Counted from the stretch's first letter, positions 7,680 to 56,669 are shown. The stretch is DNA of 64,000 bases from IMGVR_UViG_3300032116_000004:1-64000, one strand, 5' to 3'. Notes: generated from the sequence alone by a model not told the origin. Program-made: numbers and translations.

Positions 7680-8285
7680 ATGAAAACTTTTGCAGAATAC
7701 CTAACAGAATCAAAACACACGTATGATTATCGCATCAAGATAGCAGGAGACATGCCTGAGGGCTTTATGCCCGCATTCAAAGACAAGCTCAAGCAGTTTG
7801 ATGTAGTGTCAATGAGCGACGTGAAAAAAACACCTGTGCAGAAACAGCTCAAAGATTTCCCACAGTGCAACAATGAATCAATGACTTTCTTTGATGTTAC
7901 TTTCAACTATCCTGCAACACCTCCCCAAATCACCCAGATAGCTGAATTGCTGAAACTCAATCCCAACAACATTCTAATGCAAGACAAGAAATATGCAGAC
8001 AGCATGGATGAAGAGCGTGCCAAGCAAGATGTAGAAAACAAAAACGTCTTGACCGATACAGATTTTCCTGCGCCTGACAAACAGCAACGAGATCTCAAGA
8101 AAGATTACTCAGCCGCTCCCAAAGAACATCAGGTAGTGGTCAAGAACGCATACAAGAGCGATTTCACTGTGGCTGGTGGCAAGACACCGCCTGCTGTGAC
8201 TTCCAATGATTTCCCCATGGGAGACGTCAGCCCCGTGGGGACGAAACAAAACAAGATACCGGCTGTCCACAGCTCTGCCAGATAA
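7680..8285 (+). CDS. putative internal head protein
   Basis: N-terminus MKTFAEYLTES resembles the T4 capsid-targeting sequence; TAAATA at 7657. Confidence 0.6.
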   Translation: MKTFAEYLTESKHTYDYRIKIAGDMPEGFMPAFKDKLKQFDVVSMSDVKKTPVQKQLKDFPQCNNESMTFFDVTFNYPATPPQITQIAELLKLNPNNILMQDKKYADSMDEERAKQDVENKNVLTDTDFPAPDKQQRDLKKDYSAAPKEHQVVVKNAYKSDFTVAGGKTPPAVTSNDFPMGDVSPVGTKQNKIPAVHSSAR

Positions 8286-8295
8286 GGAAAACAAA

Positions 8296-9936
8296 ATGAA
8301 CAACATGTATGACATACTAGGTAAAATGAACTTGCTGGAAGGTCGTGGTTCCAAACCAGACTTTCTGGATCTGGACAAAGATGGCAACAAAACAGAACCA
8401 ATGAAGTCGGCGGCCAAAGAAGTAGACGAAGCATCCTATTCGGCCAAGGCCGCACGTGCCGGCAAAGACATCGGTAAACCTGGCAAGGCCTTTGCGCAGA
8501 TCGCAAAGTCAGCCGGTGAGCGATATGGTAGCAAAGAGCGTGGCGAGAAAGTGGCTGGCGCTGTGTTGGCCAAACTGCGCAAAACCAATGAAGATGACAT
8601 GGAAGAAGGCAACCGGTTCACAGGTAATCTTGCAAAAGCTCGTGCCGCTGGCAAGAAGATGGCCGACCTAGACGGTGACGGAGACATGGAACCAGTGCGC
8701 GAATATGAATTTGATGATCGCGATGACTTTGATCGCAGAGCCCGATCAGGCGACACAGTGAAAACAACCAAAGGCACGCTGAAGAAAACCGATCGCGGTG
8801 TGCAACACACACGTCGTCATGATGACGACAATACAGGCAGTGACGATGACTACGATGAGCACGGCAACCTCAAACCAGGCCGCAAAGATCCCAGTGCTGA
8901 AAAGCGTGGACGTGGCCGACCCAAGGGCACCAAGCATGCCATCGGTGCTAAAGGCCCCACAGGCAAGAGCAAATTGCTGAAAAAAGGTGCTATCAAAGAA
9001 GGCGATATTGATAGTATTAGTCTCGTAGATAAAGGTGAATACGATCGCGAAGGCGACATGGCCCGTGAACAGTTACACACGGTGATGGATGCAGCCAAAG
9101 AATTACACAGCATACTTGATGCAGATGAGAATTTACCAGAGTGGGTGCAGTCAAAGATCACCAAGGCCCTGGACTATCTTGACACAGCACGTGACTATGT
9201 CAAGGCCAGTGATGCTGAAGACGCAGAAGAAGTCATGCCCGAGCGCAAACTGTCAAAGCCTGAAATGGACAAGCGCGAAAAGTTTGTGAAGTCAATGAAG
9301 AAATCCAAAGGCGACTTTGAAAAGCGTTATGGCGAGCGTGGTGAAGAAGTGATGTATGCTACTGCCACCAAGATGGCCAAGAAAAAAGGCAAAGAGGAAA
9401 CTGAAGAGTCCACAGTGGCCGGATCAGTGGCCACGGCTCCTGCCACAGGAAAAGGGAAAAAAGGTATGATATTTGGTAAAGGCGTGTATGAAAGCCAGAT
9501 CACAGAAAGCTACAATCGCAGACTCAGCGAAGTGCTCACGGAAGGCATGAGCATCAACATGTCAGTGGGTGAAAACGGCGAAAAGAATCTGTCTGTGACA
9601 GCGTCAGATGACGATGCTGTAAAACTGGCACAGATACTGAAACTGGCTGGCATGGGGTCGGCTGGTGGCTACGAAGAAACATGCCCTGCATGCGGTTCCA
9701 CACCTTGTGGTTGCGAGCAAATGGCCGAAGGCCAAGAAGATGTGGCCAACGCACCCGAAGCAGAAACACAAACTGCAGACTACATGACCAAGACCATCGC
9801 AGGCGGTCTCAACAAGCAAAAACGTGACATAGCAGGCAACGGTCAGACCACTGTGCCTGTCACAGCAGTGCGTGTGCAAGAAGCCGAAGAACTTGAATCA
9901 CATTTGAGCAAACTGTATCAACAATACAAAGCATGA
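8296..9936 (+). CDS. large charged modular protein, putative prohead core/internal protein
   Basis: AAGGA RBS before ATG 8296; E/K/D-rich; repeated (L/I)xE-G/S motifs, DxDxDG motifs, RGRP motif. Confidence 0.65.
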   Translation: MNNMYDILGKMNLLEGRGSKPDFLDLDKDGNKTEPMKSAAKEVDEASYSAKAARAGKDIGKPGKAFAQIAKSAGERYGSKERGEKVAGAVLAKLRKTNEDDMEEGNRFTGNLAKARAAGKKMADLDGDGDMEPVREYEFDDRDDFDRRARSGDTVKTTKGTLKKTDRGVQHTRRHDDDNTGSDDDYDEHGNLKPGRKDPSAEKRGRGRPKGTKHAIGAKGPTGKSKLLKKGAIKEGDIDSISLVDKGEYDREGDMAREQLHTVMDAAKELHSILDADENLPEWVQSKITKALDYLDTARDYVKASDAEDAEEVMPERKLSKPEMDKREKFVKSMKKSKGDFEKRYGERGEEVMYATATKMAKKKGKEETEESTVAGSVATAPATGKGKKGMIFGKGVYESQITESYNRRLSEVLTEGMSINMSVGENGEKNLSVTASDDDAVKLAQILKLAGMGSAGGYEETCPACGSTPCGCEQMAEGQEDVANAPEAETQTADYMTKTIAGGLNKQKRDIAGNGQTTVPVTAVRVQEAEELESHLSKLYQQYKA

Positions 9937-10571
9937 TGAAAACTTTCAAAGATTATCTCGCCGAATCTGAACAATGGATGGACAATCCGGCCGTTGGTGA
10001 TGATTTTGCTATCAACATCCAAGAAGATTGCTTGATCGAAAGCCATATCATTGGCGTGGAAGAAGATAGACTGTGCATCGAAGCCGACGCCAAACTGATC
10101 AGCATACTGGAAAGTTATGGATACACTGTAGAAGATACCTGCTCTGAATGCATGCAGGAAGCATGCTCTTGCAAAGACATGGAAGAGTCCATGAGCGTAG
10201 ATGATACTTTGGTCAGCGAAGATCCCACACAAGAAGAACCTGCTTCGGACAGCCAACCTGGTGCACCCGACGGCACAGCCGCCGATGACCCCATTGGTGA
10301 AGCTGAATATCAAGGTCGCAAAGTTCCCCTGGGCAAACCCATGCGTGGCGACGTCAAGAAATTCAAAGTATATGTCCGTGATCCCAGTTCGGGCAATATC
10401 AAGAAAGTAAACTTTGGTCATGGTGGAACATCAGCCAAACGGTTGGGTCAAAAGACCATGAAGATCAAGAAGTCCAATCCTGCACGTCGCCGATCATTCC
10501 GTGCCCGACACAACTGCGACAATCCGGGACCAAGAACAAAGGCAAGATATTGGTCTTGCCGTGCGTGGTAA
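9933..10571 (+). CDS. putative internal head protein with basic Cys/His C-terminal domain
   Basis: MKTFKDYLAES N-terminus; C-terminal KKFKVYV..KKVNFG..RRRSFRARHNC..KARYWSC domain. Confidence 0.65.
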   Translation: MMKTFKDYLAESEQWMDNPAVGDDFAINIQEDCLIESHIIGVEEDRLCIEADAKLISILESYGYTVEDTCSECMQEACSCKDMEESMSVDDTLVSEDPTQEEPASDSQPGAPDGTAADDPIGEAEYQGRKVPLGKPMRGDVKKFKVYVRDPSSGNIKKVNFGHGGTSAKRLGQKTMKIKKSNPARRRSFRARHNCDNPGPRTKARYWSCRAW

Positions 10572-10586
10572 TAAGGAAAAACAACA

Positions 10587-10865
10587 ATGGCCGCAAACGT
10601 CTACACCAGTCTAGCAAACGCTACAGTCTACTCAGATAAACTGCAGATCGCCACCGGGGCTAACACCGTGACATATCAAGCCTATGCCACAGCACTCGGC
10701 AGTGCGGCTGCGGTAGGCAATATCTATTCAGCACCTATCAGCATACCGGCTAATACTGTGTTTGAAGTCTATGCTGGTGCTGGTAACAAGGTGACCGTTA
10801 CCGGAACACCTTTTACTGCTTTGGAACTAGGCACAGCGAGCTCAGCACAAGAAAGCGTGTTCTAA
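10587..10865 (+). CDS. hypothetical protein (small, Ala/Thr-rich, probably structural)
   Basis: AAGGA RBS; 92 aa beta-type composition. Confidence 0.7.
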   Translation: MAANVYTSLANATVYSDKLQIATGANTVTYQAYATALGSAAAVGNIYSAPISIPANTVFEVYAGAGNKVTVTGTPFTALELGTASSAQESVF

Positions 10866-10874
10866 GGAGCAATC

Positions 10875-11246
10875 GTGCGAGCACGCGAATTTATCGTTGA
10901 AAGTCCAGAAGGTAAGATGACCAAGCGACAGAGATGGAGCACTCGTGGTGTTCATCGTTTCAAAGATGCCGATGGTCGCGATCGCTACTACGAACTGAAT
11001 CGAGTGATGATGGCCGTGGCCTCAGCAGATGGTGTAAATCCTATAGATATCCCCAGTGCATCGTGGGCACACAATTACGACATCGCTTTTCCTTATACTG
11101 AAGAAGAAGCGGCCATGCTTCGGCAGGCCTACGATGCAGTAGGCAGCATACACCATGATCTAAACAACGGCGACATGCGCAGCCAAGAAGCACCCGGTGG
11201 TAACCCAAAGAGTCCCATCAAAGGTTTCCGAGGATATCCTCGATGA
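10875..11246 (+). CDS. hypothetical protein (paralog 1, MRAREF...FRGYPR)
   Basis: AAGGAG RBS, GTG start; shares both termini with the next gene. Confidence 0.7.
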   Translation: MRAREFIVESPEGKMTKRQRWSTRGVHRFKDADGRDRYYELNRVMMAVASADGVNPIDIPSASWAHNYDIAFPYTEEEAAMLRQAYDAVGSIHHDLNNGDMRSQEAPGGNPKSPIKGFRGYPR

Positions 11247-11647
11247 GAGCCCGAGAGTTTGTCGCTGAGCAAAAAACATTGGCGCCAGAACAAGAGTCTC
11301 CCATGCAACACACCTACGTGATCCCTGGATTGTCAGCATCAGATCCTTACAACAACTACAGATTCATGGTGGCCATCGCCCGTGCTCGTGCTGACTACGC
11401 TTCTGCACTGAATCCACAGAACAATGGCATCGATCCGTTCAAACCTGAATGGAGTTCAGAAACAGCATTTGGCGAACACGGAGTGATCGCAGGCATGAAC
11501 GCAGGCATAAAGCCCGTGATTGACCGTGCGTTGAAAATGACCAACACGCCAGGTGGCAAAAAATTAGTGACTTCAGAGAAGAGCCAGGAGCCCAGCACTA
11601 CCAATGCTACCAGCCCTATAAAAAGTTTCAGAGGATATCCTAGATAA
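11243..11647 (+). CDS. hypothetical protein (paralog 2, MRAREF...FRGYPR)
   Basis: ATGA coupling; tandem paralog. Confidence 0.7.
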   Translation: MRAREFVAEQKTLAPEQESPMQHTYVIPGLSASDPYNNYRFMVAIARARADYASALNPQNNGIDPFKPEWSSETAFGEHGVIAGMNAGIKPVIDRALKMTNTPGGKKLVTSEKSQEPSTTNATSPIKSFRGYPR

Positions 11648-12282
11648 TGGCCAGCCCGCCACCACCCTACAGCGACATAACCGGCATCAGCCGGGCGGCC
11701 ATGAAGGACAATGCCCAGGTCACTGTGGGCCAATACAATGGCAATGCAAGGCCAGCAGAACTGGTAGTAGAACAAAACGCCCTGAACTTGTATGCTGGTG
11801 ACAACAACGGCAATCTGGTGTTGTTGGCCAATGCCAATGCCACCAAGTTCTACGGATCGTTCTACGATACCACCAATCAGAACAACGACACTGGCAATGT
11901 CAACTACATGCAGTTCAACACCACCTCCAGCAACAATCATGTGAGCATAGTCAGTGGCGATGAAATCACTGTGGATTTTGCCGGTGTTTATGACATCCAA
12001 TTCAGCGCACAATTCCTGCAAACTGGTGGCGGCACACACAACATGGAAATATGGCTGGAAAAAAATGGCAACACTGTGCCAGACTCTGGTGGCGTCACCA
12101 CCTTTACAGGCAACAATAACAAAGTGGTCGTTGGTTGGAACTATGTGGAGTCCTTGGCAGCCGGTGACCATGTAAAGTTGGCCTGGTGGAGTAGTTTTGC
12201 TGGCATTGATATTGTGGCACTGGCCAGTGAAGGTCCAGGCCCTGTGGTACCCAGCGTCATAGTGACTGTGGTACAAGTTTAG
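11647..12282 (+). CDS. putative structural fibre/decoration protein with C1q/BclA-like C-terminal jelly roll
   Basis: TAATG coupling; YGSFYDTT..Q, ITV..AGVYDIQFSAQ, L.AGD.V.L pattern. Confidence 0.55.
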   Translation: MASPPPPYSDITGISRAAMKDNAQVTVGQYNGNARPAELVVEQNALNLYAGDNNGNLVLLANANATKFYGSFYDTTNQNNDTGNVNYMQFNTTSSNNHVSIVSGDEITVDFAGVYDIQFSAQFLQTGGGTHNMEIWLEKNGNTVPDSGGVTTFTGNNNKVVVGWNYVESLAAGDHVKLAWWSSFAGIDIVALASEGPGPVVPSVIVTVVQV

Positions 12283-12322
12283 CCACTTTGTTGCGCTACC
12301 AGCCCTAGCTAAATAGTATATT

Positions 12323-13945
12323 ATGGCCTATCCAAATCCAGCTAACGTAGCACCGTGGTATCTACGTAACATAACGCAGGCCCTGGAGCTGGACGAGGCC
12401 ACCGGCAACGTATTTGTCCGCACCAACGCTGTGCTAGTTGGCAATGTGTCAGTGGGCAATATAAGCATTGGCGCACTGGGTAATATCGATCTCACAGGCA
12501 ACACCATGCCCATATCGGGCAATGTCACTGTTTTCCAGGGCACCACACCTTGGGTGATCTCAGGCAACACCAATGTCGCTATAACGTCGGGCAATGTGGG
12601 CATAACCGGAAACATCGCGGGTATCACTGCCAACGTCACTGTGGTTGATGGTGGTGGAAGCATAACCATAGATGGCAATGTGGGCATCACTGGCACGGCC
12701 AATGTGGTGCTGGCTGATGACGCCAATGTAGTGATATCTGGGTTTGGCGGAGCCACTGCCGATGCGTTTGGGCGTCTGCGTGTGTCTGAACCTGTTAGCC
12801 TGTTTGAAACTCAGGCTCGCTACTACGATCATGGCCAGTTTGCTAACTCCATATCTGGCACTGGCAACGTGGTATATGTAGCCGCTCAGAGTTCCTATCA
12901 GCTCAACGTGGGCACAGCGTCGGGCGATTCAGTGCTGAGAGAAACGCTGAAGCCATTTCCTTACCAGCCTGGCAAGAGCCAACTCACACTGAACACATTT
13001 TGTTTTAACACACCAAAGACAAATCTCCGCCAGCGTGTGGGCTTGTTTGATGCCAACGACGGTGTGTATTTTGAAAACGATGGATCCTACAACTACATGG
13101 TCATACGTTCAGGATCCACTGGAGTGGAAGAGCGTATCAGACAAGATGCCTGGAATGTCGATCAACTCAATGGCACAGGACCTGTGACCAATCCGTCTGG
13201 TATCACGCTGTATCCTGATCGAACACAGATCTTTTTTGCTGATGTGGAGTGGCTGGGCGTGGGCTCAGTGCGTGTGGGCTTTGTCATCAACGGTGCGTAT
13301 ATTATCTGTCATTCATTTCCTCATGCCAATCAACCGGGCAACACCAAGGTCTACATGACCACGGCCACCTTGCCCATACGCTATGAAATAACCAACACTG
13401 GCGCTGTCGCCGGCACCAGCATGATGACACAGATCTGTAGCACAGTGATCTCTGAAGGTGGATTCCAACTGAGTGGATCAGGCAATCCCAGAGCCGCCAG
13501 TCATGCCATAGGCACTCCGGTTCGCTTGCCCAATGATCAGACTTTTAAACCCGTTATCGCTATCCGACTCAAGAGCACCAATCTCAATGCCGTGGTTATA
13601 CCCATAAACTACAGCCTGGTACCTGTGGCTGCCAGCATATTCCAGTTCCGAATCTATAAAAAAGCCATCACATCAGGTGGCTCATGGACGGATTCAGCTG
13701 TAGACAGTTCAGTGCAATACAACCTCGCTCCCACAGCCTTGGTGTCAGGCGACATCGCTGAACAGTCATTCATAAACTCAACCAACCAGAGCACAGGTTC
13801 TCCCACGCAAGAAACATTTACTTTTGAATATCAGCTGGAGCGAGAGCCTTTTACTGGCACACCATACGAGTATGTGATTACCATGGCCACCACCGGCACC
13901 AATCAAGACGTCTATGCCAGTGTGGAATGGCAAGAAATAACATAA
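12323..13945 (+). CDS. putative virion structural protein with GN(V/I) repeat stalk and globular C-terminal domain
   Basis: Repeated GNV/GNI units, then DAFGRLRVS, YQPGKS, WLGVG.VR.GF, LPIRYEI; TAAATA 7 nt before ATG. Confidence 0.6.
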   Translation: MAYPNPANVAPWYLRNITQALELDEATGNVFVRTNAVLVGNVSVGNISIGALGNIDLTGNTMPISGNVTVFQGTTPWVISGNTNVAITSGNVGITGNIAGITANVTVVDGGGSITIDGNVGITGTANVVLADDANVVISGFGGATADAFGRLRVSEPVSLFETQARYYDHGQFANSISGTGNVVYVAAQSSYQLNVGTASGDSVLRETLKPFPYQPGKSQLTLNTFCFNTPKTNLRQRVGLFDANDGVYFENDGSYNYMVIRSGSTGVEERIRQDAWNVDQLNGTGPVTNPSGITLYPDRTQIFFADVEWLGVGSVRVGFVINGAYIICHSFPHANQPGNTKVYMTTATLPIRYEITNTGAVAGTSMMTQICSTVISEGGFQLSGSGNPRAASHAIGTPVRLPNDQTFKPVIAIRLKSTNLNAVVIPINYSLVPVAASIFQFRIYKKAITSGGSWTDSAVDSSVQYNLAPTALVSGDIAEQSFINSTNQSTGSPTQETFTFEYQLEREPFTGTPYEYVITMATTGTNQDVYASVEWQEIT

Positions 13946-13956
13946 AGGATATCAAG

Positions 13957-14397
13957 ATGAAACTCTACGTTTTTTTAGCACTGCTCATAGCCATAGCAGT
14001 TCCAGCCTTGGCACAAAAAGCACCACAAGGCGTTACCTATGACGCACAAATACTAAGGGTCAGCGACGGCGACACTATTGTTATCAGTGCGCCGTTTCTT
14101 CCTCGACCGCTCAAGCCAGAACTTGCTGTCCGCATCTATGGTGTTGACACTCCAGAAAAAGGACACCGATCTCAGTGCCCCAGCGAAGCACAACGTGGTG
14201 AAGCTGCCAGTGCCTTTACCAAACAAGCAGTTGCATCAACACAAAAGCACCAAGTCACACTCTATGCCTGGGACAAGTTCGGTGGTCGTGTTCTGGGAGA
14301 TATCATACTGAATGGTGTGAGCCTACGTGCTGAATTGATTAAAAATGGATTCGCCAGAGAATACTACGGTGACGCCAAGCAGTCGTGGTGTCAGTAG
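13957..14397 (+). CDS. thermonuclease (SNase-like) with signal peptide
   Basis: VSDGDTI, VRIYGVDTPE, DKFGGRVLG, LIKNGFAREY; hydrophobic N-terminus ending ALA-Q. Confidence 0.88.
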   Translation: MKLYVFLALLIAIAVPALAQKAPQGVTYDAQILRVSDGDTIVISAPFLPRPLKPELAVRIYGVDTPEKGHRSQCPSEAQRGEAASAFTKQAVASTQKHQVTLYAWDKFGGRVLGDIILNGVSLRAELIKNGFAREYYGDAKQSWCQ

Positions 14398-14927
14398 GTT
14401 CGTATCTGTTCTTCTTTGAGGCCCAGATACAGATGCCACGAAGGATGCCGCACCCCTCGATAAGTGCTCTTCACTGAATCTACCAACTTCCAGTAGTTAG
14501 GCTTGTAAGGAGTTTTGTTTGGCCTCCACACCTTGTTGCCTTTGTTGGAGTTGCAGGTCTTGCAACAGGTCACGCAGTTTTCCCAAGAAGTGATGCCACC
14601 TTGTGCTCTGGGCAACACATGGTCTATGGTTAGATGTCTTGCGCCCAAGGTGTCATTGCAATATTGGCAAGTAAACAGATCACGCAGATAGAGATTCTGG
14701 CGGCTGAAACGCATACCACCATTCTTACCAAATCCTTTCTTTGTGACAGCCACAGCAGGCACACGCATTTCCAATTTGGCACTGCGCACAGTCCAATCGT
14801 CATACCATTCTAGCACTTGGATCTTGTCCAAGAAGAACAGTTTGATAGCAGTCTGCCAATCTATGGTTGACAGCGGCAAGTAGTTTACTGGTTGATAGTC
14901 TGGTGCTAATACTAACGTGTCGCTCAT
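14391..14927 (-). CDS. HNH endonuclease (McrA-like)
   Basis: LRD.FTCQYC, TIDHVLPRAQGG..SWENCVTCC..CNSNKG. Confidence 0.9.
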   Translation of the reverse strand: MSDTLVLAPDYQPVNYLPLSTIDWQTAIKLFFLDKIQVLEWYDDWTVRSAKLEMRVPAVAVTKKGFGKNGGMRFSRQNLYLRDLFTCQYCNDTLGARHLTIDHVLPRAQGGITSWENCVTCCKTCNSNKGNKVWRPNKTPYKPNYWKLVDSVKSTYRGVRHPSWHLYLGLKEEQIRTY

Positions 14928-14932
14928 AATGA

Positions 14933-14960
14933 TATTTATCGGCGTATATTTTGGTAAGTA
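14933..14960. promoter_or_regulatory. back-to-back late promoter-like motifs (TAAATA minus, TAAGTA plus)
   Basis: TATTTA 14933-14938, 5 nt from minus ATG 14927; TAAGTA 14955-14960, 5 nt from ATG 14966. Confidence 0.55.
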
Positions 14961-14965
14961 ACAGT

Positions 14966-16531
14966 ATGTCCAAGAGTCTCGAAGGCGTCCTTATCAAGCA
15001 ACCGCATCGCAGGATGCCTTACACTGAACAGCAGGTCGATGAGTTCGTGAAATGTGCGGATCCTGAATCGGGTCCTACTTACTTCATGAGTCATTTTTTC
15101 TACATACAACATCCCTTGTATGGTAAGATGCTGTATCAGCCCTATGAATTCCAAGAACGCTTGATCGAGACCTATCACAATTATAGATTCTCTATATCCA
15201 TGATGCCTAGGCAAACGGGCAAATCTACTTCGGCAGCAGGCTATCTGCTGTGGTATGCCATGTTCGTTCCGGATTCGACCATCTTGGTGGCCGCCCACAA
15301 GTATCTGGGCGCACAGGAGATCATGCAACGTGTTCGTTATGCCTATGAAGCCTGTCCAGATCATATCAGGGCAGGGGTTGTGAGTTACAACAAAGGATCT
15401 ATAGAATTTGACAATGGATCACGTATCGTCAGCCAGACCACAACAGAAAACACCGGTCGTGGTATGTCAATAACCTTGCTCTACTGCGACGAGTTTGCGT
15501 TCGTGCGCCCGGGCATAGCCAAAGAGTTTTGGACTTCCATCACACCCACGCTGTCAACTGGTGGTAAAGCCATTGTTACGTCCACGCCCAATTCAGACGA
15601 AGATCAGTTTGCGCTGATCTGGAAACTGGCCAACAAACTGGAAGATGACTACGGCAATCCCACAGAAATAGGGCAGAATGGTTTCCGGGCTTTCCGTGCA
15701 TATTGGCGCGAACATCCTGACCGTGACGATGCCTGGGCTTCACAGCAAAAAGCCATACTGGGCGAAGAACGTTTCCGCCGAGAGATGGACTGCGAATTCA
15801 TCATCGACGACGAGACCTTGATCGCTCCTACTAAACTGATCGATCTTGTGGCCACTGAACCCATCTACAAGACTGGACAGGTGCGCTGGTTCAAACCCAT
15901 AAACAAAGAGCATATCTATGTAGTAGCCCTGGACCCTAGCCTGGGCACCGGGGGAGACCCGTCGGCCATCCAGGTGTTTGATGCCAACACCACAGAACAG
16001 GTAGCCGAATGGCGGCACAACCGGACCGACATTCCCAGCCAGGTTCGCATCTTGGCCGATGTGTGCAAACACATTAATGAAACACTGCGTGATTCCAAAA
16101 GCATCTATTTTACAGTGGAGAACAATACCATTGGCGAAGCTGCCTTGATATCCATAGCAGAATATGGCGAAGAAAACATCCAGGGCTATTTCCTCAGCGA
16201 TCCCAGCAGTGGCGGCGGACGCAGATATCGCAAAGGATTCAACACCACCAACAAGCCCAAACTGGCGGCCTGCGCCAAACTGAAAAATCTCATTGAAACT
16301 GGTAGGATGCGCATTAATTCTGCCAGCCTCATCACTGAACTCAAGAACTTCATAGCGCACGGTGCCAGTTACGCGGCCAAAGTAGGCGAAACCGATGATC
16401 TTGTCATGGCCACGCTGTTGGCTGTGCGCATGATGCAACTGCTCCAGAGTTATCATCAAGAACTGGACACACAACTGCGTGATCATTCGGATACCATCAT
16501 AGAACCCATGCCCTTCATAGCCGTGTTCTAA
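14966..16531 (+). CDS. terminase large subunit (gp17-like)
   Basis: PRQTGKS Walker A, LLYCDEFA Walker B, TSTPN, ALDPSLG and DDLVMA nuclease motifs. Confidence 0.95.
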   Translation: MSKSLEGVLIKQPHRRMPYTEQQVDEFVKCADPESGPTYFMSHFFYIQHPLYGKMLYQPYEFQERLIETYHNYRFSISMMPRQTGKSTSAAGYLLWYAMFVPDSTILVAAHKYLGAQEIMQRVRYAYEACPDHIRAGVVSYNKGSIEFDNGSRIVSQTTTENTGRGMSITLLYCDEFAFVRPGIAKEFWTSITPTLSTGGKAIVTSTPNSDEDQFALIWKLANKLEDDYGNPTEIGQNGFRAFRAYWREHPDRDDAWASQQKAILGEERFRREMDCEFIIDDETLIAPTKLIDLVATEPIYKTGQVRWFKPINKEHIYVVALDPSLGTGGDPSAIQVFDANTTEQVAEWRHNRTDIPSQVRILADVCKHINETLRDSKSIYFTVENNTIGEAALISIAEYGEENIQGYFLSDPSSGGGRRYRKGFNTTNKPKLAACAKLKNLIETGRMRINSASLITELKNFIAHGASYAAKVGETDDLVMATLLAVRMMQLLQSYHQELDTQLRDHSDTIIEPMPFIAVF

Positions 16532-16544
16532 TAAATATAATACC

Positions 16545-18056
16545 ATGAGCGATAAAAACACACCCGCACGCCAACTATATGACCTGCTCGTAGCGCAGGA
16601 TTTTGAACCCGAAGCCCTGGACAGCCAAGGCAAACCCGCCGCTGATCCTGCTGATGCAGACATCATCAGTTTTGACTATGCCACTCCTGAAAAGGACTAT
16701 GGCACTGTGGTAGTGGCCCTGGACGGTGAAAACAACCTGGACATGTATTTTGGAGACAACATGGCACGAGCCATGGAAGGCAATGATCGTGGCGACTGGT
16801 ATGATTTCCTGTATCTGGTTCGCATGTTCGCCAAACGCAATCTGCTCACGTTTAACGTAAAAAATCTCAGCAGACTCAAATACAACATGAAGACCATGGC
16901 TGCCGTCAAAGAAAGCCTGTTTGAAGGCTACTATGGCAACCGCAAGATTTCCTACTCAGATCAACCCAATCGCGCACGGCTTGTGATCAAACACAACAAA
17001 ACCTTGGGTGAAGGTGATGCACGTTTCCGCCATATCGAAAGCCTCTATGTAGAGAATGCCGAAGGTGAACGTTTCCGTGTGCCCAGCCGCAGCCTCACAC
17101 ATGGTCGCATGCTGGCACGACACGTGGCCGAAGGTGGCACACCCTACGATGCCTTTGGCATCCACATCACAGAGATCGTGGATGAGATGAAAACGCTCAG
17201 CAACTTCGTGCGTGCGGCACGGCATCGTGACTATACCGGTGAAGCCGCGCACATGGTAGAAGCTGCCATACGCCACTACGCTGATCTCAAAGCCAAGGCC
17301 AAGAAGATGATAGGTCGCAGAGGCTATCACGAAGAACGTGACAGTTTTGATCCTGCTGAGATCACAGAGATAGACGAAGCAGTGGAGACCATACGCGAAT
17401 TGTTCGTGAAACAGACTTTGGATCCTAGAGTAGAACAGGCCTTGCCTGTGCTGGCACGACTGCAAGAACAGGATCTCCCCGAAGCCGACGAATTTGAATC
17501 ATGGACTGACCGTGTGATGGAAGGCACCTGGGCCATACCAGAGACTCCTGAGCAGGTAAAAAAATTACAGATCTTGATGAGCAAAGATCTCATCGTGGGA
17601 CCTGATGCTTCCAATGCCACAGAACAACTGTATGACATCATTGGCGACGACGAACTGTTTGACATCTTGGAAGACATGGCCATGACCAACCCTGACGCCA
17701 ATGTGTGGGACGATCCTCGTGTGCAAAAAAGATTGGAACAGTTGGGCATACCAGGTATGGATGCCATAGACCTTGATGCAGTCAAAGAAGGACAGGTAAA
17801 AAGATTGGCCATGGGCGACATCTCTGCAGAACCAGATGCTCAAGGACCCTATGATGTGATACGCAGGCGTGATGGTATCGAATCCGGCCTACATCAATAT
17901 GGCAATCGTGAGCAGGCCCGGAAACACGCACAGAATCTCAAGAACAAATACCCCAGCATGGAAGTGGGCATCAGACCCGCTGGTCAACGAACCGAATATA
18001 TAGGCATCAAAGAAAGCCAAGGGCTAGATAGATTATTGAATCTAGCTCGGTCATGA
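16545..18056 (+). CDS. hypothetical protein (probable head-associated)
   Basis: 503-aa ORF; TAAATA 7 nt before ATG; internal LFEG/VMEG/VKEG/IKES motifs. Confidence 0.7.
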   Translation: MSDKNTPARQLYDLLVAQDFEPEALDSQGKPAADPADADIISFDYATPEKDYGTVVVALDGENNLDMYFGDNMARAMEGNDRGDWYDFLYLVRMFAKRNLLTFNVKNLSRLKYNMKTMAAVKESLFEGYYGNRKISYSDQPNRARLVIKHNKTLGEGDARFRHIESLYVENAEGERFRVPSRSLTHGRMLARHVAEGGTPYDAFGIHITEIVDEMKTLSNFVRAARHRDYTGEAAHMVEAAIRHYADLKAKAKKMIGRRGYHEERDSFDPAEITEIDEAVETIRELFVKQTLDPRVEQALPVLARLQEQDLPEADEFESWTDRVMEGTWAIPETPEQVKKLQILMSKDLIVGPDASNATEQLYDIIGDDELFDILEDMAMTNPDANVWDDPRVQKRLEQLGIPGMDAIDLDAVKEGQVKRLAMGDISAEPDAQGPYDVIRRRDGIESGLHQYGNREQARKHAQNLKNKYPSMEVGIRPAGQRTEYIGIKESQGLDRLLNLARS

Positions 18057-18616
18057 ACGCTGTCCGGATCAATCAGCAACTGTGGACGGCCAAAGATTTC
18101 TTTGAACCCGATCAATGGCGATCGATCAAACTGGCATATAGACGATCTCGCGTGCCATTTTCCATGCAGTATGACGACCGTTTGCTCACACCATGGTCAG
18201 ACACTCCCGAATTACAACAGATAGTAGAAGCCAACACTGAACGTGTGAGCCAACTGGTCGGCCGGCCTCTGGCACCGCAAGTGGCCTATGTCAGCATCGA
18301 TCTAGCCGGCAGTTCCATAATGATGCACAGGCTACATCCTGACATCTTGGTGCAGGTGCAGATTGGCATGGGCGAAGAATCCGACTGCCGTATGGCATTC
18401 TGTTTCTGTCATGACAGCCAGGTCAATGCGGAAAGCGAACTAGACTATCAGCCTATGCGCCGGCTCACTAGACACGATGTTGATGTGGTCAATTATGAAC
18501 CCAATCTAGCCAGCATCTATGTCAATGAACCTCGTGGATTCTGTGGCATGCTGTCCTGCGTGCCGGGCAACACAGTGAGAGAAGTGCTGGTATTGAGTTA
18601 TACCAAATTGTATTGA
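18053..18616 (+). CDS. degenerate 2OG-Fe(II) oxygenase-like protein
   Basis: Aligns by eye with paralogs (HRLHPDILVQVQI vs HSDSPDIIVTYQVY) but lacks the HxD Asp and the distal His. Confidence 0.5.
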   Translation: MNAVRINQQLWTAKDFFEPDQWRSIKLAYRRSRVPFSMQYDDRLLTPWSDTPELQQIVEANTERVSQLVGRPLAPQVAYVSIDLAGSSIMMHRLHPDILVQVQIGMGEESDCRMAFCFCHDSQVNAESELDYQPMRRLTRHDVDVVNYEPNLASIYVNEPRGFCGMLSCVPGNTVREVLVLSYTKLY

Positions 18617-19158
18617 AATGTCACGCTGGCACGTGTGCCGATTCCAGGCAATACCCTATGAGGTTTGAGATCGGTATTGACATTGATATAACCTTTGTTA
18701 TTGGCCAACTCTAACTTGTATGGCGGATCCACATGCAAGAATTCGATACCGTGACAGGGATCCTGTTTTGAAGACCAAATGTCAACATAGACTTGATAGG
18801 TAACTATGATGTCTGGTGAATCTGAATGTGTCTGGCAGGCAAAGCCCGGCAAGTCTAGCCAAAATTTCACTATCATGAGATTGAGATCCAATCCAGAGAT
18901 CTGATTCAATGAAGGTATGATATCCAACCCTATCTGTTGTAATCGGGCATGATCCGGGCCCGGTTGCAACATCAGTCTGCGATGGGGTCGTGAAACTGCG
19001 AATTGATTTTGTTCGTTTATCACAATGTCCTGCATCCATGACAATGTTTCGGAGCAAAAACACTCATCCACAAGCCAACAGTTCGGTGCCACTGATTGCA
19101 ATTGACAGACTTGATCATATATCTTGACTTGTTGTGTAGATGTGTTATACTGTGTCAT
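18598..19158 (-). CDS. 2OG-Fe(II) oxygenase superfamily protein
   Basis: FWLD.PGF...HSD, NKGY, PHRV, RAS (HxD..H..R); start set at ATG 19158, 7 nt after TAAATA. Confidence 0.7.
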   Translation of the reverse strand: MTQYNTSTQQVKIYDQVCQLQSVAPNCWLVDECFCSETLSWMQDIVINEQNQFAVSRPHRRLMLQPGPDHARLQQIGLDIIPSLNQISGLDLNLMIVKFWLDLPGFACQTHSDSPDIIVTYQVYVDIWSSKQDPCHGIEFLHVDPPYKLELANNKGYINVNTDLKPHRVLPGIGTRASVTFQYNLV

Positions 19159-19207
19159 ATGCCGATATTTACATGCCAAAATCAATGTTCAAAAGAAAAA
19201 TCGCCTT

Positions 19208-19241
19208 TTGACATTGACATGCTAAATATCTATGCTACACT
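19208..19241 (+). promoter_or_regulatory. sigma70-like promoter(s) with nested TAAATA upstream of SSB
   Basis: TTGACA(19208)-17-TATGCT and TTGACA(19214)-16-TACACT; TAAATA 19223-19228. Confidence 0.65.
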
Positions 19242-19304
19242 CAGTAGGGTGTATGCAAGGCATATATAGGCAATTTAAAATTTCTTGAAAGGACAATTTC
19301 TATT

Positions 19305-50610: not shown

Positions 50611-50856
50611 ATGCACAAAAAGACCCGCAGTATATTAGAAGAACTCGATGCTATGTATATCGAGCGTGATCGCAGGCACGTGATAGAAAATCGTGCTTCA
50701 AACATCATTGCCGGCGCCATCAGGCTCATGGAGCAGATCGATGCCACTTATGATCCAGAGCAGGCAGAAAATCTCCAGCGCAAGCTACTCAACGCCATAC
50801 GCATGCGGGATGCGTCAAAATTCACGAGGACCGTGAGACGCACCGATGAAAGTTAA
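50611..50856 (+). CDS. hypothetical protein
   Basis: TAAATA at 50588; 81-aa helical ORF. Confidence 0.7.
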   Translation: MHKKTRSILEELDAMYIERDRRHVIENRASNIIAGAIRLMEQIDATYDPEQAENLQRKLLNAIRMRDASKFTRTVRRTDES

Positions 50857-51526
50857 ACAGGTCACTAACGAAGGTATTTTCCAAGATTTGGCCACCATTG
50901 GGCGTGCCGAGCAAGATCGCATGGCCCAAAGCCGTTCGGCCATGATGGGCAAGGCCGGAGCCGCGATCAAAGGCGCCATGGGCAAAATACCCGGCGTCAG
51001 TGCCATCCAGCAAACAGCCGCTGCCATCAAACAGGCCGCACAAGATACTACCATCCGGCAACTGGCAGATAAACTGGCCGCCGCATGGGACACAGAAGCC
51101 AAGAAAATAAACGCTGGCAAGACTGCTGGACAGGTCATGGATGCGGATGAATACAAAAAACGAGCGGCTGCCTGGTTAGAGCAAGCCATGCAAGGACAGG
51201 TCGCTGTGGATGAGCGCAACATGGACAAGTATATCACCCAACCAGCCATAGAACAGATGCGTGAATATCTGGCCAAGCATTTTTTGCCCGCCTACAAAGT
51301 CAGCAAAACCGCAGTGGCTCCGGAAATACCTAACGGATACAATGTGATGGTGCGTGGCGGCAGGGCAGGAACTACCGAGATTCCTGACGAAATCTACACC
51401 TGGGCCAATGGTCGTTGGACCAGTGCCAGCGGCCAACAGGTCATCGCCGGCACACCATTGCACAACAGTCTTTCACAGGATGCCGCAGGCAAAATCAAGT
51501 CCACCACAGTTTCGCAGGCCATATGA
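50846..51526 (+). CDS. putative internal head protein
   Basis: MKVKQVTNEG N-terminus; Ala/Gln/Lys-rich. Confidence 0.55.
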   Translation: MKVKQVTNEGIFQDLATIGRAEQDRMAQSRSAMMGKAGAAIKGAMGKIPGVSAIQQTAAAIKQAAQDTTIRQLADKLAAAWDTEAKKINAGKTAGQVMDADEYKKRAAAWLEQAMQGQVAVDERNMDKYITQPAIEQMREYLAKHFLPAYKVSKTAVAPEIPNGYNVMVRGGRAGTTEIPDEIYTWANGRWTSASGQQVIAGTPLHNSLSQDAAGKIKSTTVSQAI

Positions 51527-53400
51527 TGAGATTACTAGAAGGTGGCAACGTATTCAAGGATGATCAAGGACAGGTCATCACGCAACGCATAGCGCAAGCC
51601 GACATCATGCCCACTGTGCAGTGGCTAGAACCCATCACTGGCATTGACTTTACCACAGAAAAAGACTCCATAGATGGACAACCGGCACGCTGGTTGGGTT
51701 CCACCGGTCGCAAGGAATCATCAGGTGATCTGGATCTGCAGATAGATGCCACAAAAATCTCCAAAGAACAATTGATAGATCGACTGCGAGATTGGGCCAA
51801 ACAGCAAGGAGTGGATCCACAACGCTACATCAAGAAGTCCGGAATATCTGTGCATTTCCTCACTGCCATTGGTGGTGACCCACGTCGTGGGTTTGTGCAG
51901 ACCGATTTCATGTTCGCAAATAAACCACGCTGGAATCAGTTCGTGTTGCGTAGCGATCCGGCCAGTGCCTACAAAGGTGCCCTGCGCAACATCATGATCA
52001 ACTCCATGGCCAAATCCATGGGTTTCAAACTCAATCAGAATGATGGTATCGCAAATCGCAACACCAATGACATTGTCACCGACGATCCAGACGCGGTGGC
52101 CAAACTGTTGCTGAATCCCACCGCATCGGCCAAAGACCTCTATTCCGTGGAGAGCATCATGCGTGCTCTCAAAATGGATCCAAACAAAGACAGCAAGATA
52201 GCAGACTTCCGTGCGCACATGGAACGTGAAGGCCAGCCCTTTGATGAAAATTTAGAAGAAGCCGAAGTGCATTTCTTGGCTCGCCTGCGCGACAGGATCG
52301 TGAATCAGGGCATGCAAATCATCGCTGAAGGTGTGCGCATCGAGCATCCCGAAGACATGGTATTTGACATGGGCAGTCGCGGCGCACAACAAGCACTCAC
52401 AGGCATTGTAAATACCGCACAGCAACCAGACACTGCCACTGTGAAATGGGATGGCAAACCCGCTATCATCTTTGGTCGCAAATCCAACGGTGATTTTGTG
52501 CTCACTGACAAGGCCGGTTTCCTGGCCAAGGGCTATGATGGTCTGGCCACTTCGCCTGATATGATCGCCCGCATCATGACTGCCAGAGGCGGCGAGCGTG
52601 GCGAACTCATAGGACTATATCAAAAACTGTTTCCGTTGTTGAGAGCAGCCACACCTCCAGATTTCAGAGGCTATGTTCAAGGAGACTTGCTCTACAGCGC
52701 ACAACCTCAACAAGAGAATGGCAAATGGGTGTTCCAGCCCAACACAGTGAAATATTCAGTGGATGCTGACAGCGATCTTGGTCGCCAGATCGCGGCCAGT
52801 GATGCCGCAGTGGTCGTCCACACACAGTTAGATGCGCCAGGTGCGGCAGCCACTCCCATACGTGCGGCGGCACTGAAGCCGGTTCCGGGCCTGTTGATCT
52901 TGGACCCCAGCCTGCGAGAACCACAGCAAATAAAACTCGACGCCAAGACCGTAAAGAAAACACAGGATCTACTGAAATCCAAAGGTGCGGCCATAGATGC
53001 GCTGTTCAACCCTGCAGAACTGCGTGCCCGCAAGATCACCAACTTACCACAGTTGATGAAACAGTATATCAACACCCGTGTGCGTGCTGGCAGTTATGAT
53101 AACTTGATACAGGGATTTGGTCCCTGGGTGCAGGAACGAGAACCAGCCAAGGCACCGCGCATATTTGAGTGGGCCAATCTCAACAAACAGGGCGTGGCCG
53201 CTGTGTTCCAGACATTCTTGGATCTCAGCGCCTTGAAGAATCAAGTGGTGCGACAGTTAGACAGCCAAGCACATGATGTGCAGGCATCCATCAACGACGA
53301 GCCCGGACACGAAGGTTATGTGGGCCAGGGCATGAAATACGTGGATCGCATGCGTTTCAGCCAAGCCAACTTTGCCCGCAACAATCCTGATCTAGCCTGA
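51523..53400 (+). CDS. fusion protein: Pol-beta-type nucleotidyltransferase-like domain plus KxDG ligase-like domain
   Basis: LGSTG..SSGDLD..VQTDFM in the N-half; EHPED, TVKWDG, QGD, EGYV, KYVDR..FS in the C-half. Confidence 0.6.
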   Translation: MMRLLEGGNVFKDDQGQVITQRIAQADIMPTVQWLEPITGIDFTTEKDSIDGQPARWLGSTGRKESSGDLDLQIDATKISKEQLIDRLRDWAKQQGVDPQRYIKKSGISVHFLTAIGGDPRRGFVQTDFMFANKPRWNQFVLRSDPASAYKGALRNIMINSMAKSMGFKLNQNDGIANRNTNDIVTDDPDAVAKLLLNPTASAKDLYSVESIMRALKMDPNKDSKIADFRAHMEREGQPFDENLEEAEVHFLARLRDRIVNQGMQIIAEGVRIEHPEDMVFDMGSRGAQQALTGIVNTAQQPDTATVKWDGKPAIIFGRKSNGDFVLTDKAGFLAKGYDGLATSPDMIARIMTARGGERGELIGLYQKLFPLLRAATPPDFRGYVQGDLLYSAQPQQENGKWVFQPNTVKYSVDADSDLGRQIAASDAAVVVHTQLDAPGAAATPIRAAALKPVPGLLILDPSLREPQQIKLDAKTVKKTQDLLKSKGAAIDALFNPAELRARKITNLPQLMKQYINTRVRAGSYDNLIQGFGPWVQEREPAKAPRIFEWANLNKQGVAAVFQTFLDLSALKNQVVRQLDSQAHDVQASINDEPGHEGYVGQGMKYVDRMRFSQANFARNNPDLA

Positions 53401-53432: not shown

Positions 53433-53471
53433 AAAGTAGGCCCGCTAAGGCCACTTATTAGGAGATTTAAA

Positions 53472-53855: not shown

Positions 53856-53876
53856 TCTGTAGTTTTGGTATAGAAG

Positions 53877-53906
53877 AAACCCTAGTTCTTTAACTAGGGT
53901 TTTTTT
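53877..53906 (+). terminator. rho-independent terminator
   Basis: AAACCCTAGTT-CTTT-AACTAGGGTTT plus T-run. Confidence 0.85.
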
Positions 53907-53923
53907 GTGGCTTAAATACCCGC

Positions 53924-54166
53924 ATGGCAGATCAACGATACGTATATGAAAGTCCTGATGGTGGACACACTATCTATCGCAGGCATCCTGGCAAACTGGA
54001 TAGAGAATTGGTATCCATCGATCAGGAAACCCAGGACAAACTGGCTGCCTTGAAAGAAGACAAACTGTGGGGCGATATACGGCGCAGAGCCCAGCAAGAT
54101 CCTGCCCTACAGCAGATGTTGGATCAACTACGGATCTACTACAGTCTCAAGTATGCAAAAGATTGA
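53924..54166 (+). CDS. hypothetical protein
   Basis: YESPDGG.TIY.R motif; TAAATA 5 nt before ATG. Confidence 0.7.
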   Translation: MADQRYVYESPDGGHTIYRRHPGKLDRELVSIDQETQDKLAALKEDKLWGDIRRRAQQDPALQQMLDQLRIYYSLKYAKD

Positions 54167-54584
54167 ATGCTATACCTTGTTTGATATCACTGCTACTGGG
54201 ATAAATGGGCACGTCAAAGCCGCACAGTTTCCTTATGTGAGTCGCAACGGACTGACCATGGCAGACCCAGCGTCCTTGGCACGAGCACGCAATCAACAAA
54301 GGAATTTTGACACCTTATTGCAGTTGATCGGACTGCGCACCCAAATGTTCAATGTCAGCGATCCCACTGTGCAGGACACAGGGCCCTTTGGCAATCAACG
54401 AACCTGGCACTTTGATTTTGAGATAGAACCGCAGGCGCAATGGTTGGTGGATGGTGATGAATTTTGGGTGCTTAAACAGGACAGTGACAGCACACCCATG
54501 ATCATTGATCTAGAAGAAACATCTGATCTCGAACCCAGGATCATAACATTAGGGGACAGCCCCAACACCATATATCATGCCTAA
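54153..54584 (+). CDS. hypothetical protein
   Basis: TLFDIT.TG, RNQQRNF.TL.Q.I.LR, W.F.FE. Confidence 0.7.
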   Translation: MQKIECYTLFDITATGINGHVKAAQFPYVSRNGLTMADPASLARARNQQRNFDTLLQLIGLRTQMFNVSDPTVQDTGPFGNQRTWHFDFEIEPQAQWLVDGDEFWVLKQDSDSTPMIIDLEETSDLEPRIITLGDSPNTIYHA

Positions 54585-54616
54585 ATCTATAAATAAATCC
54601 ATAACGAAGGAAGATC

Positions 54617-54880
54617 ATGGTCACGACCACGGACATCGAAAAGAAAAGCCTAGAAACTCACGTGGAACTGTGCGCGGAGAGATACAAGTTTCTGGAAGAA
54701 AAACTGGAAAACGTGGAGCAAAAGGTAACACAGACCGAAACCGTGATCAGAGAGATTCACGACATGATGCAAAGAATGGCCGACAAGCGCACGGATCAGA
54801 TCATATCGTGGGGCATAGGAATAATCGGGTTCCTGCTGGCCAGCCTGGGCTGGATGATAACCACATACGTGATCAAATAA
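54617..54880 (+). CDS. coiled-coil protein with C-terminal transmembrane helix (possible lysis/membrane protein)
   Basis: HVELCAERY, coiled coil, then WGIGIIGFLLASLGWMI; TATAAATA at 54588 and AAGGAAG RBS. Confidence 0.65.
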   Translation: MVTTTDIEKKSLETHVELCAERYKFLEEKLENVEQKVTQTETVIREIHDMMQRMADKRTDQIISWGIGIIGFLLASLGWMITTYVIK

Positions 54881-54891
54881 TCATAGACCGC

Positions 54892-55383
54892 GTGGAATCC
54901 ACGCTGGATCGCATAGCAAGACAGGTATTTGCCAATCCCAACTCAATACTGCCAGTCAACGATGGGTATCAAGCATTTGGACGCTATACTATCGTCAAAC
55001 AGGCCCAGTATTTTGAAGTGTATCGTGGAGCCACATTGGCCGCATGCCCCAGTTCTGCACGCCTGGCCCTGGCATGGTGCATAGCCGACAAACTGGGCAA
55101 ATTCACCCTCACACAAGAGATCATGCTGTTTGATCAAGAAATAGAACGCCGCAGAGATGAGATCAGATATTTCCGGCACATGATAGAAACCACCACAGAC
55201 ACTGAGCGTAAATATGTGCTGGAAGACAGATTGCAACACAGCCACACACGCTTGAAGTGGTTGCAAGAACACTTGGACAAATGCGTAAATCTGGCTAAAT
55301 ACTGGCAACAAAAAGGATTCAAAGATGAAACTGCAAGAATTGGACTCAAAAACCAAAACACAACAAACACGCAAAGTGCTTGA
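54892..55383 (+). CDS. hypothetical protein (start uncertain)
   Basis: C-terminal part of the 54577 ORF looks protein-like (ALAWCIADK, coiled coil). Confidence 0.55.
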   Translation: MESTLDRIARQVFANPNSILPVNDGYQAFGRYTIVKQAQYFEVYRGATLAACPSSARLALAWCIADKLGKFTLTQEIMLFDQEIERRRDEIRYFRHMIETTTDTERKYVLEDRLQHSHTRLKWLQEHLDKCVNLAKYWQQKGFKDETARIGLKNQNTTNTQSA

Positions 55384-56332
55384 AAGTTACTTTGGTCAAC
55401 AGTTAGACGTCGGCGCTGTCAGCGTCAAGACGGCCAAAGAGATGTTGAAAAAAATCCGCGGGCTGATCCGTGAGCATCGTGGCACACCACAATTCCATCG
55501 CAGTGAAAAGAATCCTGCTTATCTAAAGATGGTGGTCATGGAACAGGCTCTAGAGTCCAGGATACGAGAATCTCAACCTGGTGCCGCTCCTGGCATGGCC
55601 ATGGCACAACAAGATCCACGACAGGCCGCTGCCGCCGCACAAGCAGACGCCAAATCTATGTCGGGCGGAATACGCAAAGCCGCTGCCGCCACTGGCACGC
55701 AGGCCAATCCTTTGGCTCGCGCAGTATCACAGGCCGCCCTGGGCAAGACCTTGGATCAGACCCAAAAGAAAGCCATGGCAGGTTTTGCCGCTGGCATTGG
55801 TGCTGCCATGAAAGATCCTCAGCAGGCCACACGTCTACAACAGATGTTGAAAACAGCCACGGCATCAGCCATGGAAGGCAAACGAGCACGCCGGCTCAAA
55901 GAAGCCAGCGAGATACAACAGGCTCAAGTGGTATTGGCCGCACAAGACATGGTTGACCAAGTTCAAAAAATGATTGAACAAGTTTCGGCCATGCAGTTCA
56001 AAGATTTGCCAGCACTTGTAGATTCGATCCGTAACGATCTTGGTATGGATCAAGCACAACAGTTTAACAATGATTGCACAGCCGCACTACAAGGTCTCAT
56101 CCAGGGCCTCCAGGGTTCCAAGACCCAGCTGGAAACCGCACAAGGTGTGCTCACAGGTCAAGCCCCAGTGGTTCCCGGACAAGATGCTGGCGCCGCAGGA
56201 GCCGCTACCCTTCCTACCGGAGATGTATCCGGTGCTGACACCGGTGAAACTCCAGACCTCAGCCTAGATGCCAATCTCGATGTAGATGCTGAAGAACTAC
56301 CAGCCCGAGCATTAGGCCGCGAGCGTAGATAA
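55325..56332 (+). CDS. putative prohead core/internal protein
   Basis: MKLQEL N-terminus, IRES/MEG/LKEA sites, Ala/Gln-rich helices; TAAATA at 55296. Confidence 0.6.
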   Translation: MKLQELDSKTKTQQTRKVLESYFGQQLDVGAVSVKTAKEMLKKIRGLIREHRGTPQFHRSEKNPAYLKMVVMEQALESRIRESQPGAAPGMAMAQQDPRQAAAAAQADAKSMSGGIRKAAAATGTQANPLARAVSQAALGKTLDQTQKKAMAGFAAGIGAAMKDPQQATRLQQMLKTATASAMEGKRARRLKEASEIQQAQVVLAAQDMVDQVQKMIEQVSAMQFKDLPALVDSIRNDLGMDQAQQFNNDCTAALQGLIQGLQGSKTQLETAQGVLTGQAPVVPGQDAGAAGAATLPTGDVSGADTGETPDLSLDANLDVDAEELPARALGRERR

Positions 56333-56333
56333 C

Positions 56334-56669
56334 ATGCTGATCCGAGAGTTCCAGGATCCCTCAGTGCAGAGACTGGCCGCCATAGGCCAGTTTTTGCTCA
56401 AACGAGCCCAGGACACAGCCGCGGTCAAACCTTACAATGTAGATGCCTTTATAGATCTAGCCAGAGAAAATGGTATCAACATGGATCGGGAACGCTTGAT
56501 GACCTTGTCTACGCAACCACCACTCAACAATATCATCGCCAATATCCAGGGTGATGATATCATCTGGAAAGGTTCCCAAACCATCACACCAGATGGCGAA
56601 ACCATGTCAGTGGATCAAGCCCGCAAAAAAGTCAACCAAATGGCCAAACGGGCCATTGACATCAAGTAA
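56334..56669 (+). CDS. hypothetical protein
   Basis: MLIREF N-terminus; V.QMAKRA C-terminus. Confidence 0.7.
   Translation: MLIREFQDPSVQRLAAIGQFLLKRAQDTAAVKPYNVDAFIDLARENGINMDRERLMTLSTQPPLNNIIANIQGDDIIWKGSQTITPDGETMSVDQARKKVNQMAKRAIDIK

Follow-up and report, generated by a model that had tools for sequence, protein, structure and literature searches.

The 64-kb stretch of DNA analysed here (IMGVR_UViG_3300032116_000004:1-64000, hereafter the window) is the first part of a 315,778-bp IMG/VR viral contig, estimated to be about 91% complete, and several of its genes encode proteins that begin with a peptide of nine or ten residues resembling the capsid-targeting sequence (CTS) of phage T4. This tag is enriched at N-termini, is under selection as a peptide, is carried by otherwise unrelated proteins and occurs together with a T4-type head-maturation module. 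Reasoning by analogy with T4, we favor, with a probability of roughly 70%, the reading that it is a capsid-targeting propeptide in both of its canonical forms: a 10-mer, MKTF-x-[ED]-YL-x-E, at 7680 and 9936, and a 9-mer, MRA-x-EF-[IVL]-x-E, at 10875 and 11243 (Table 1). An initial annotation of the window had listed nine T4-like N-termini. All nine are present, at or no more than three bases from the positions given there, but the likeness is canonical in only these four; the other five are weaker and are treated below as candidates only.

A selected peptide at the N-termini of unrelated proteins

We searched the genome with a loose form of the pattern, M[KR][ATSVY]x(1-2)[ED][FYLI], and used internal in-frame ATG codons as controls. 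The pattern occurs at 12 of 378 predicted N-termini, compared to 2 of about 2140 internal in-frame ATGs (Fisher p = 7.7e-9). Eight of the 12 fall in a cluster at genome positions 161989-172194, outside the window, where the tags include MRSQEFISE, MRAQELLVE, MRVAEFIAE (164997) and MKASEFVSE. The tagged genes thus form three clusters, the largest of them this distant one, and not two as had been proposed from the window.

The same holds among relatives. Three protein-seeded scans of IMG/VR yielded about 180 related loci, which together with the genome itself amount to 2.74 Mb. In this set the strict 9/10-mer stands at 149 open reading frame (ORF) starts and at only one of 20,646 internal ATGs, defined as lying more than 40 codons into an ORF (p = 6e-92). 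Both searches therefore find the motif strongly enriched at N-termini. A scan of all of IMG/VR with a DNA pattern for the 9-mer returned at least 120 stretches, several of them on contigs of 190-520 kb; among the 80 loci listed from that scan, the pattern sits at an ORF start in 86 of 95 matches.

The proteins behind the tag have little in common. With the first 14 residues removed, the nine listed window proteins show BLAST similarity only between 10875 and 11243, in the C-terminal tail, in agreement with their earlier description as mostly unrelated. Across the larger set, 105 distinct tagged proteins sort into 31 BLAST families once the tag is trimmed, ranging from about 50 to about 800 residues. 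One might suppose that the shared N-termini are remnants of ancestry among fast-diverging paralogues and have no present function, as the tandem arrays and the true paralogy of 10875 and 11243 would allow. This is hardly credible for 31 families of such different size and domain content that share only nine residues, and the tag positions do not evolve at the rate of the flanking sequence. Six of the nine positions are nearly invariant among orthologues that share only 28-55% identity, which requires purifying selection.

Conservation ends where the tag ends. Across 11 orthologues of 10875, per-position conservation reads 9 9 9 1 9 9 5 1 9 and collapses thereafter. In the wider set of 10875/11243 orthologues, M1, R2, A3, E5, F6 and E9 are present almost without exception, and the collapse comes at residue 10. 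When proteins are anchored on MRAxEF alone, position 9 is Glu in 71 of 86 (83%, against a background of 5.5%) and position 7 is Ile, Val or Leu in 74 of 86 (86%), with no conservation from position 10 onward. In the tags, Ala, Phe, Ile and Glu are each encoded by varying synonymous codons, and the DNA upstream of tagged genes holds a purine-rich Shine-Dalgarno signal but no conserved nucleotide block. Selection therefore acts at the level of the peptide.

These results make it very unlikely that the motif persists as an RNA or DNA element, for translation initiation or coupling or as a recombination hotspot, with a peptide that has no role. Codons 3, 5, 6, 7 and 9 are freely synonymous while the amino acids are fixed, position 7 switches among Ile, Val and Leu codons, and the missing upstream block argues in the same direction. 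Some nucleotide-level influence is nonetheless apparent. In many tagged genes the start codon overlaps the preceding stop codon as ATGA, suggesting that translation is coupled along the arrays, and the Arg of codon 2 is AGA in 69 of 89 tags, compared to 16% of Arg codons genome-wide. An AGA second codon fits such overlaps, and the tag pattern is therefore partly shaped at the nucleotide level. In T-even phages, conserved tag-coding DNA is thought to aid the shuffling of internal-protein genes. On the family count and the synonymous-codon evidence, we rejected both the paralogy and the RNA-level explanations.

Likeness to T4 and the proposed route into the head

In the T4 genome (NC_000866), ipII and ipIII start with MKTYQEFIAE, Alt with MELITELFDE, gp22 with MLKEQLIAE and gp67 with MEGLIE. 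The first of these is indeed, as the initial annotation had it, the 10-residue targeting peptide that gp21 removes (PMC9026906). The first 10 residues of IPIII suffice for packaging; within them, residues 4 and 7 are important for targeting, and 8 and 10 for processing, and Asp at position 10 blocks cleavage but not targeting (PMC9026906). The tags at 7680 and 9936 match this peptide at M1, K2, T3, an aromatic residue at 4, an acidic residue at 6, an aromatic residue at 7, an aliphatic residue at 8 and E10, so that the 10-mers of the window retain positions 4, 7, 8 and 10 in kind. The 9-mer shares with the T4 peptide the core E-F-[IV]-x-E, and its last three residues fit the pattern cut by gp21, with an aliphatic P3 and Glu at P1.

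The start of 7680 is right, since its orthologues keep the longer start, and they retain the tag at 50-73% identity. The protein also resembles phrog_14802, annotated "virion structural protein" (E = 2.6e-4). Orthologues of 9936 start with MKSLKDYLAES and MTKSLRDYITES.

The setting is likewise T4-like: the peptide lies at the extreme N-terminus of otherwise unrelated proteins, the genes are clustered, and the genome encodes a gp21-family protease, a protein in the scaffold position and gp23. T-even phages carry varied internal proteins that have only the leader in common (PMC12373910). The differences lie in the form and the scale. The dominant form here is a 9-mer that starts with MRA and lacks the Tyr4 position. 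At least 12 canonical tags occur in this genome, and its relatives hold 31 families, compared to 3 in T4 and about 10 across the T-even phages (PMC12373910). The cargo here includes proteins of at least 600 residues with enzyme domains, known in this phage from sequence alone.

The genome itself belongs to the same broad lineage. Its tail sheath (1091-4384) is about 40% identical to the sheaths of Agrobacterium phage Atu_ph07 and the Pseudomonas PA5oct group, and megablast of both window clusters against isolate phages returned no match. The phage is therefore an uncultivated jumbo myovirus of the wider T4 superfamily without a close isolate. The opposite end of the contig carries a head module of T4 type, which would sit directly upstream of the window if the map is circularized. 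The order is a likely portal (309474-311255), two small proteins starting with MNLFEF and MNKFEQLIE, the prohead protease, the scaffold-position protein and gp23. The protease (genome 312482-313105) belongs to the Peptidase_S77 family (PF03420, E = 4.8e-28, 95.5 bits). It shares 35% identity with T4 gp21, and the blocks that surround the catalytic His and Ser, HP and GVSSRG, are kept; its own N-terminal region contains V-L-E/G. The capsid protein matches PF07068 (E = 4.3e-100, 332 bits) and has an I-L-E site no more than four residues from where T4 gp23 is cleaved in the alignment. The putative scaffold was recognized solely from its place in the module, and BLAST finds no similarity between this protein and T4 gp22.

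By analogy with T4, we infer a sequence of core binding, cleavage, residence in the head and injection. The tag would bind the scaffolding core of the prohead during assembly, so that whatever protein bears it is enclosed. The gp21-type protease would then cut on the C-terminal side of the final Glu (P3 being aliphatic) and free the mature cargo inside the head, from which it would exit with the DNA into the host. The load would comprise no fewer than 12 proteins with canonical tags, encoded in three gene clusters. For the proposed removal by the prohead protease, the one line of support is the conservation cliff directly after the Glu.

The giant phages related to phiKZ provide a second point of comparison. 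They have long, varied propeptides with S/A/G-x-E as the cleavage motif. In phiKZ, 201phi2-1 and SPN3US, a gp21-like prohead protease processes many head-internal proteins after Glu, and these phages carry a large set of cargo (PMC5694885, PMC10052503). Unlike these phages, the one described here falls in the T4 superfamily near PA5oct and Atu_ph07, its head genes match T4 families, and it uses one short, uniform tag. The phiKZ-type motif would fit A-x-E at tag positions 3-5, as well as the S-x-E that is invariant close to the C-terminal end of the 11243-family proteins.

Virion evidence comes from PA5oct, which is syntenic with window bases 1-20,000. PA5oct gp202, the counterpart of 7680 by sequence search, and gp203, encoded by the next gene and the counterpart of 8296 by position and a similar N-terminus only, are both virion proteins by electrospray ionization tandem mass spectrometry (ESI-MS/MS). 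Most PA5oct genes neighboring gp202 and gp203 carry the same ESI-MS/MS note, and neither this note nor the "structural" labels of phage 121Q, discussed below, separates head from tail. The PA5oct paper does not discuss processing or targeting.

The tag could instead be a recognition peptide for a process other than packaging, such as a degron or processing site that a phage or host protease reads with no encapsidation, or a means of docking to a phage chaperone or another compartment. The evidence is for a selected N-terminal peptide rather than for a destination of the protein, and two tagged proteins point to the periplasm and are not obvious head cargo. In the protein encoded at genome 162570-162968 (L026:9570-9968), the 9-mer is followed directly by a twin-arginine translocation (TAT) signal that scores 28.8 bits, compared to a Pfam cut-off of 22.7; a protein unrelated to it, at L201:2992, has the same layout. 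A cut after Glu9 would leave the TAT signal peptide at the new N-terminus of both. We nevertheless consider a non-packaging role unlikely, given the close match to the T4 peptide at functionally mapped positions, the co-occurrence of the tag with the gp21/gp23 module and the position of the first cluster among virion genes, with PA5oct homologues that are virion proteins.

Several observations weigh against the capsid-targeting reading, in addition to the AGA preference at codon 2. The final Glu is missing from several tagged proteins. Such variants, for example the HAD/GNAT family at genome 162965, are perhaps packaged uncleaved, like the T4 Asp10 mutants. PA5oct gp202 starts with MKSFRDYYDA and has no Glu at position 10. 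The 9-mer pattern finds no match in PA5oct, the nearest cultivated relative, which for this reason cannot serve as a direct experimental proxy for it. The main tagged family, that of 11243, has no homologue in 50,697 isolate phage records (tblastn, even at E = 1). For the T4 late promoter TATAAATA there is no enrichment, with 8 sites compared to 7.3 expected, and it does not lie upstream of tagged genes; an argument from late co-expression was dropped on these grounds. For this phage, finally, as for any carrier of the 9-mer, packaging, cleavage and injection are argued from sequence comparison and from T4.

Weaker N-termini in the window

The five remaining N-termini (8296, 50846, 51523, 55325 and 56334) may be cleavage sites or merely conserved starts. 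They fit a looser class than the tag of the T4 internal proteins. Other propeptides of the T4 prohead core (Alt, gp22, gp67, gp68, gp21 and gp24) are short leads that end in aliphatic-x-Glu, and this pattern recurs in the two small head-module proteins and in 7172, 8296, 51523, 55325 and 56334. It is also common by chance, occurring within the first 12 residues of 74 of the 378 predicted proteins.

Table 1. Window genes with canonical, weaker or candidate tag-like N-termini (a slash marks the putative cleavage position).
Coordinates	Strand	Length (residues)	N-terminus	Remarks
7172..7654	+	160	MT[RK]KLEELFDLP	acidic
7680..8285	+	201	10-mer MKTFAEYLTE/S (bases 7680-7709)	closest match to T4 ipII/ipIII peptide
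8296..9936	+	546	...MNLLE/G (residues 11-16)	first 15 residues end L-L-E/G
9936..10571 (start 9933/9936)	+	211	(M)MKTFKDYLAE/S	C-terminal 90 residues = phrog_7595
10875..11246	+	123	9-mer MRAREFIVE/S	GTG start; strong AAGGAG Shine-Dalgarno
11243..11647	+	134	9-mer MRAREFVAE/Q	paralogue of 10875; conserved C-terminal tail
50846..51526	+	226	MKVKQVTNE/G	degenerate 9-mer
51523..53400 (start 51523/51526)	+	625	(M)MRLLE/G	lead of 5-6 residues, then invariant E/GGNVFKD
55325..56332	+	335	MKLQEL	short head; L-Q-E at residues 3-5
56334..56669	+	111	MLIREF	short head; I-R-E at residues 3-5

Two of the five, 8296 and 51523, have only an [LI]-L-E/G boundary in common. The N-terminus of 8296 is kept in its orthologues, and we regard these residues as a candidate propeptide rather than a canonical tag. 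In the 51523 family (58 orthologues), 3-6 variable residues precede the invariant E/GGNVFKD, which may mark a cut or only the beginning of the fold. The adjacent gene, 50846, is closer to the tag: its orthologues keep M-K-x-x-[DE]-[IV]-x-x-E-G, and one reads canonical MRAREFISE/G. In two loci from different samples (L072 and L079), a 50846-like and a 51523-like gene are fused in frame, and the junction ...MLAE/GGNVF is kept. The fusion links the two proteins and is consistent with, though no proof of, a cut at the junction Glu.

Of the tag, 55325 and 56334 carry only a short head, M-[KR]-[LI]-x-E-[FLV]. In 55325, MKL[QH][ED]L is kept in 31 orthologues and followed by a sharp drop in conservation, while M-[LRK]-[LI]-x-E-[FV] is moderately conserved in 28 orthologues of 56334. 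The second cluster of the window is syntenic with genes 21-28 of phage 121Q, which lie between the helicase and exonuclease/NrdAB genes, and 121Q gp24, gp25, gp27 and gp28 are annotated as structural proteins. The protein encoded at 55325 matches gp27, labeled "structural protein", at E = 1.4e-10 and phrog_14154, "virion structural protein", at E = 4e-12. The link between 56334 and 121Q gp28, which starts with MRFRDL, is one of size and position only.

We put at somewhat under even odds the explanation that the resemblance of these five is incidental and that they are ordinary conserved starts that happen to hold aliphatic-x-Glu. The frequency of that pattern speaks for it, as does the variable lead of 51523, where Glu-Gly may just open a PolX-like domain; moreover, the untagged neighbors 53472 and 54153 likewise have conserved N-terminal regions. 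Against it stand the canonical 9-mer in an orthologue of 50846, the tag-like cliff after residue 6 of 55325 together with its likeness to an annotated 121Q structural protein, and the V-L-E/G of the protease, a boundary of the same type as in 8296 and 51523.

One further gene, 7172, was absent from the initial annotation. Its 12 N-terminal residues are invariant across orthologues and give way to a variable acidic stretch, and ELFD is shared with the start of T4 Alt. The homologue in PA5oct, gp201, was not detected by virion mass spectrometry. We list this Alt-like start as a low-confidence candidate.

Candidate cargo proteins and neighboring genes

Pfam and NCBIfam scans assign no family to most cargo proteins. 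An exception is 51523, which matches Pfam DUF6267 (E = 1.3e-39). It has no sequence match in the PDB, and its two domains emerged only from fold searches with a structural model (predicted local distance difference test, pLDDT, 84.7). Residues 6-205 align with Pol beta (Z = 9.0, VIA-align) and carry a GS...GDLDL motif, while residues 269-619 align with RNA ligase (Z = 7.4, VIA-align) and carry a KWDG motif. On this model, 51523 is a predicted two-domain protein that combines a PolX-like nucleotidyltransferase with an RNA/DNA-ligase-like adenylyltransferase.

The 11243 family is the commonest of the tagged families, with 25 members, and its proteins are small, mildly basic and encoded in tandem. 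The invariant S-x-E of the 10875/11243 proteins lies about 18 residues from the C-terminus and is followed by an SP[IV]K-x-F-x-GY tail; together they may form a second processing site or a binding tail. The fold model of 11243 is weak (pLDDT 69.5) and gave no fold match.

In the third cluster, the tagged protein at genome 161989 has a weak match to a T7 gp0.7-like kinase (E = 1e-4), and the protein at 162965 combines a HAD phosphatase with GNAT and keeps the targeting half of the tag without the final Glu. Together with the PolX and ligase domains of 51523, these matches hint at effector-like enzymes. T4 offers a precedent, as all three of its internal proteins, Ip1-3, are restriction enzyme inhibitors (PMC12373910). 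The cargo is therefore a reasonable place to seek anti-defence or host-takeover activities, and an anti-defence role is no more than a reasonable guess.

A T4 capsid-targeting sequence is a known kind of system; new here are the lineage in which it occurs, its 9-mer form and how large the repertoire is. If the tag works as it does in T4, nine residues would predict the packaged and injected proteins across an uncultivated clade of jumbo phages, and would yield, from sequence, a list of candidate early-acting effectors. Few of the tagged families have a known function; the list already holds 31 families in a small sample, and IMG/VR holds far more. A doubtful extension is that the 9-mer is a general address label in a large uncultivated jumbo-phage clade, with dozens of effectors per virion and some cargo routed onward. 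Were that true, the injected proteome could be read directly from metagenomes, and removal of the tag would expose the TAT signal and send the injected protein to the host periplasm. A compact natural tag of this kind may also prove useful for bringing foreign proteins into large capsids.

Some features of the cargo genes and their surroundings remain to be described. The eight tagged N-termini of the third cluster belong to translationally coupled arrays. The cluster adjoins a 1669-residue multidomain protein with an amidoligase and a weak nucleotidyltransferase match below the Pfam cut-off, and also a protein that looks Dps-like by eye. The C-terminal stretch of about 60 residues in the HAD/GNAT protein (genome 164630-164809) recurs at 80-92% identity in dozens of IMG/VR loci that are unrelated in other respects. 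Basic, Cys-containing modules of a similar kind form the C-termini of several tagged proteins, 9936 (window 10300-10571) among them. At window 56701-57406, immediately downstream of the second tagged cluster, two adjacent genes look IscU- and IscA-like by eye. The gene call at window 54577-55383 is ambiguous, as a 268-residue ORF there overlaps one of 87 residues read in a different frame (54617-54880); position 54588 holds one of the few TATAAATA sites.

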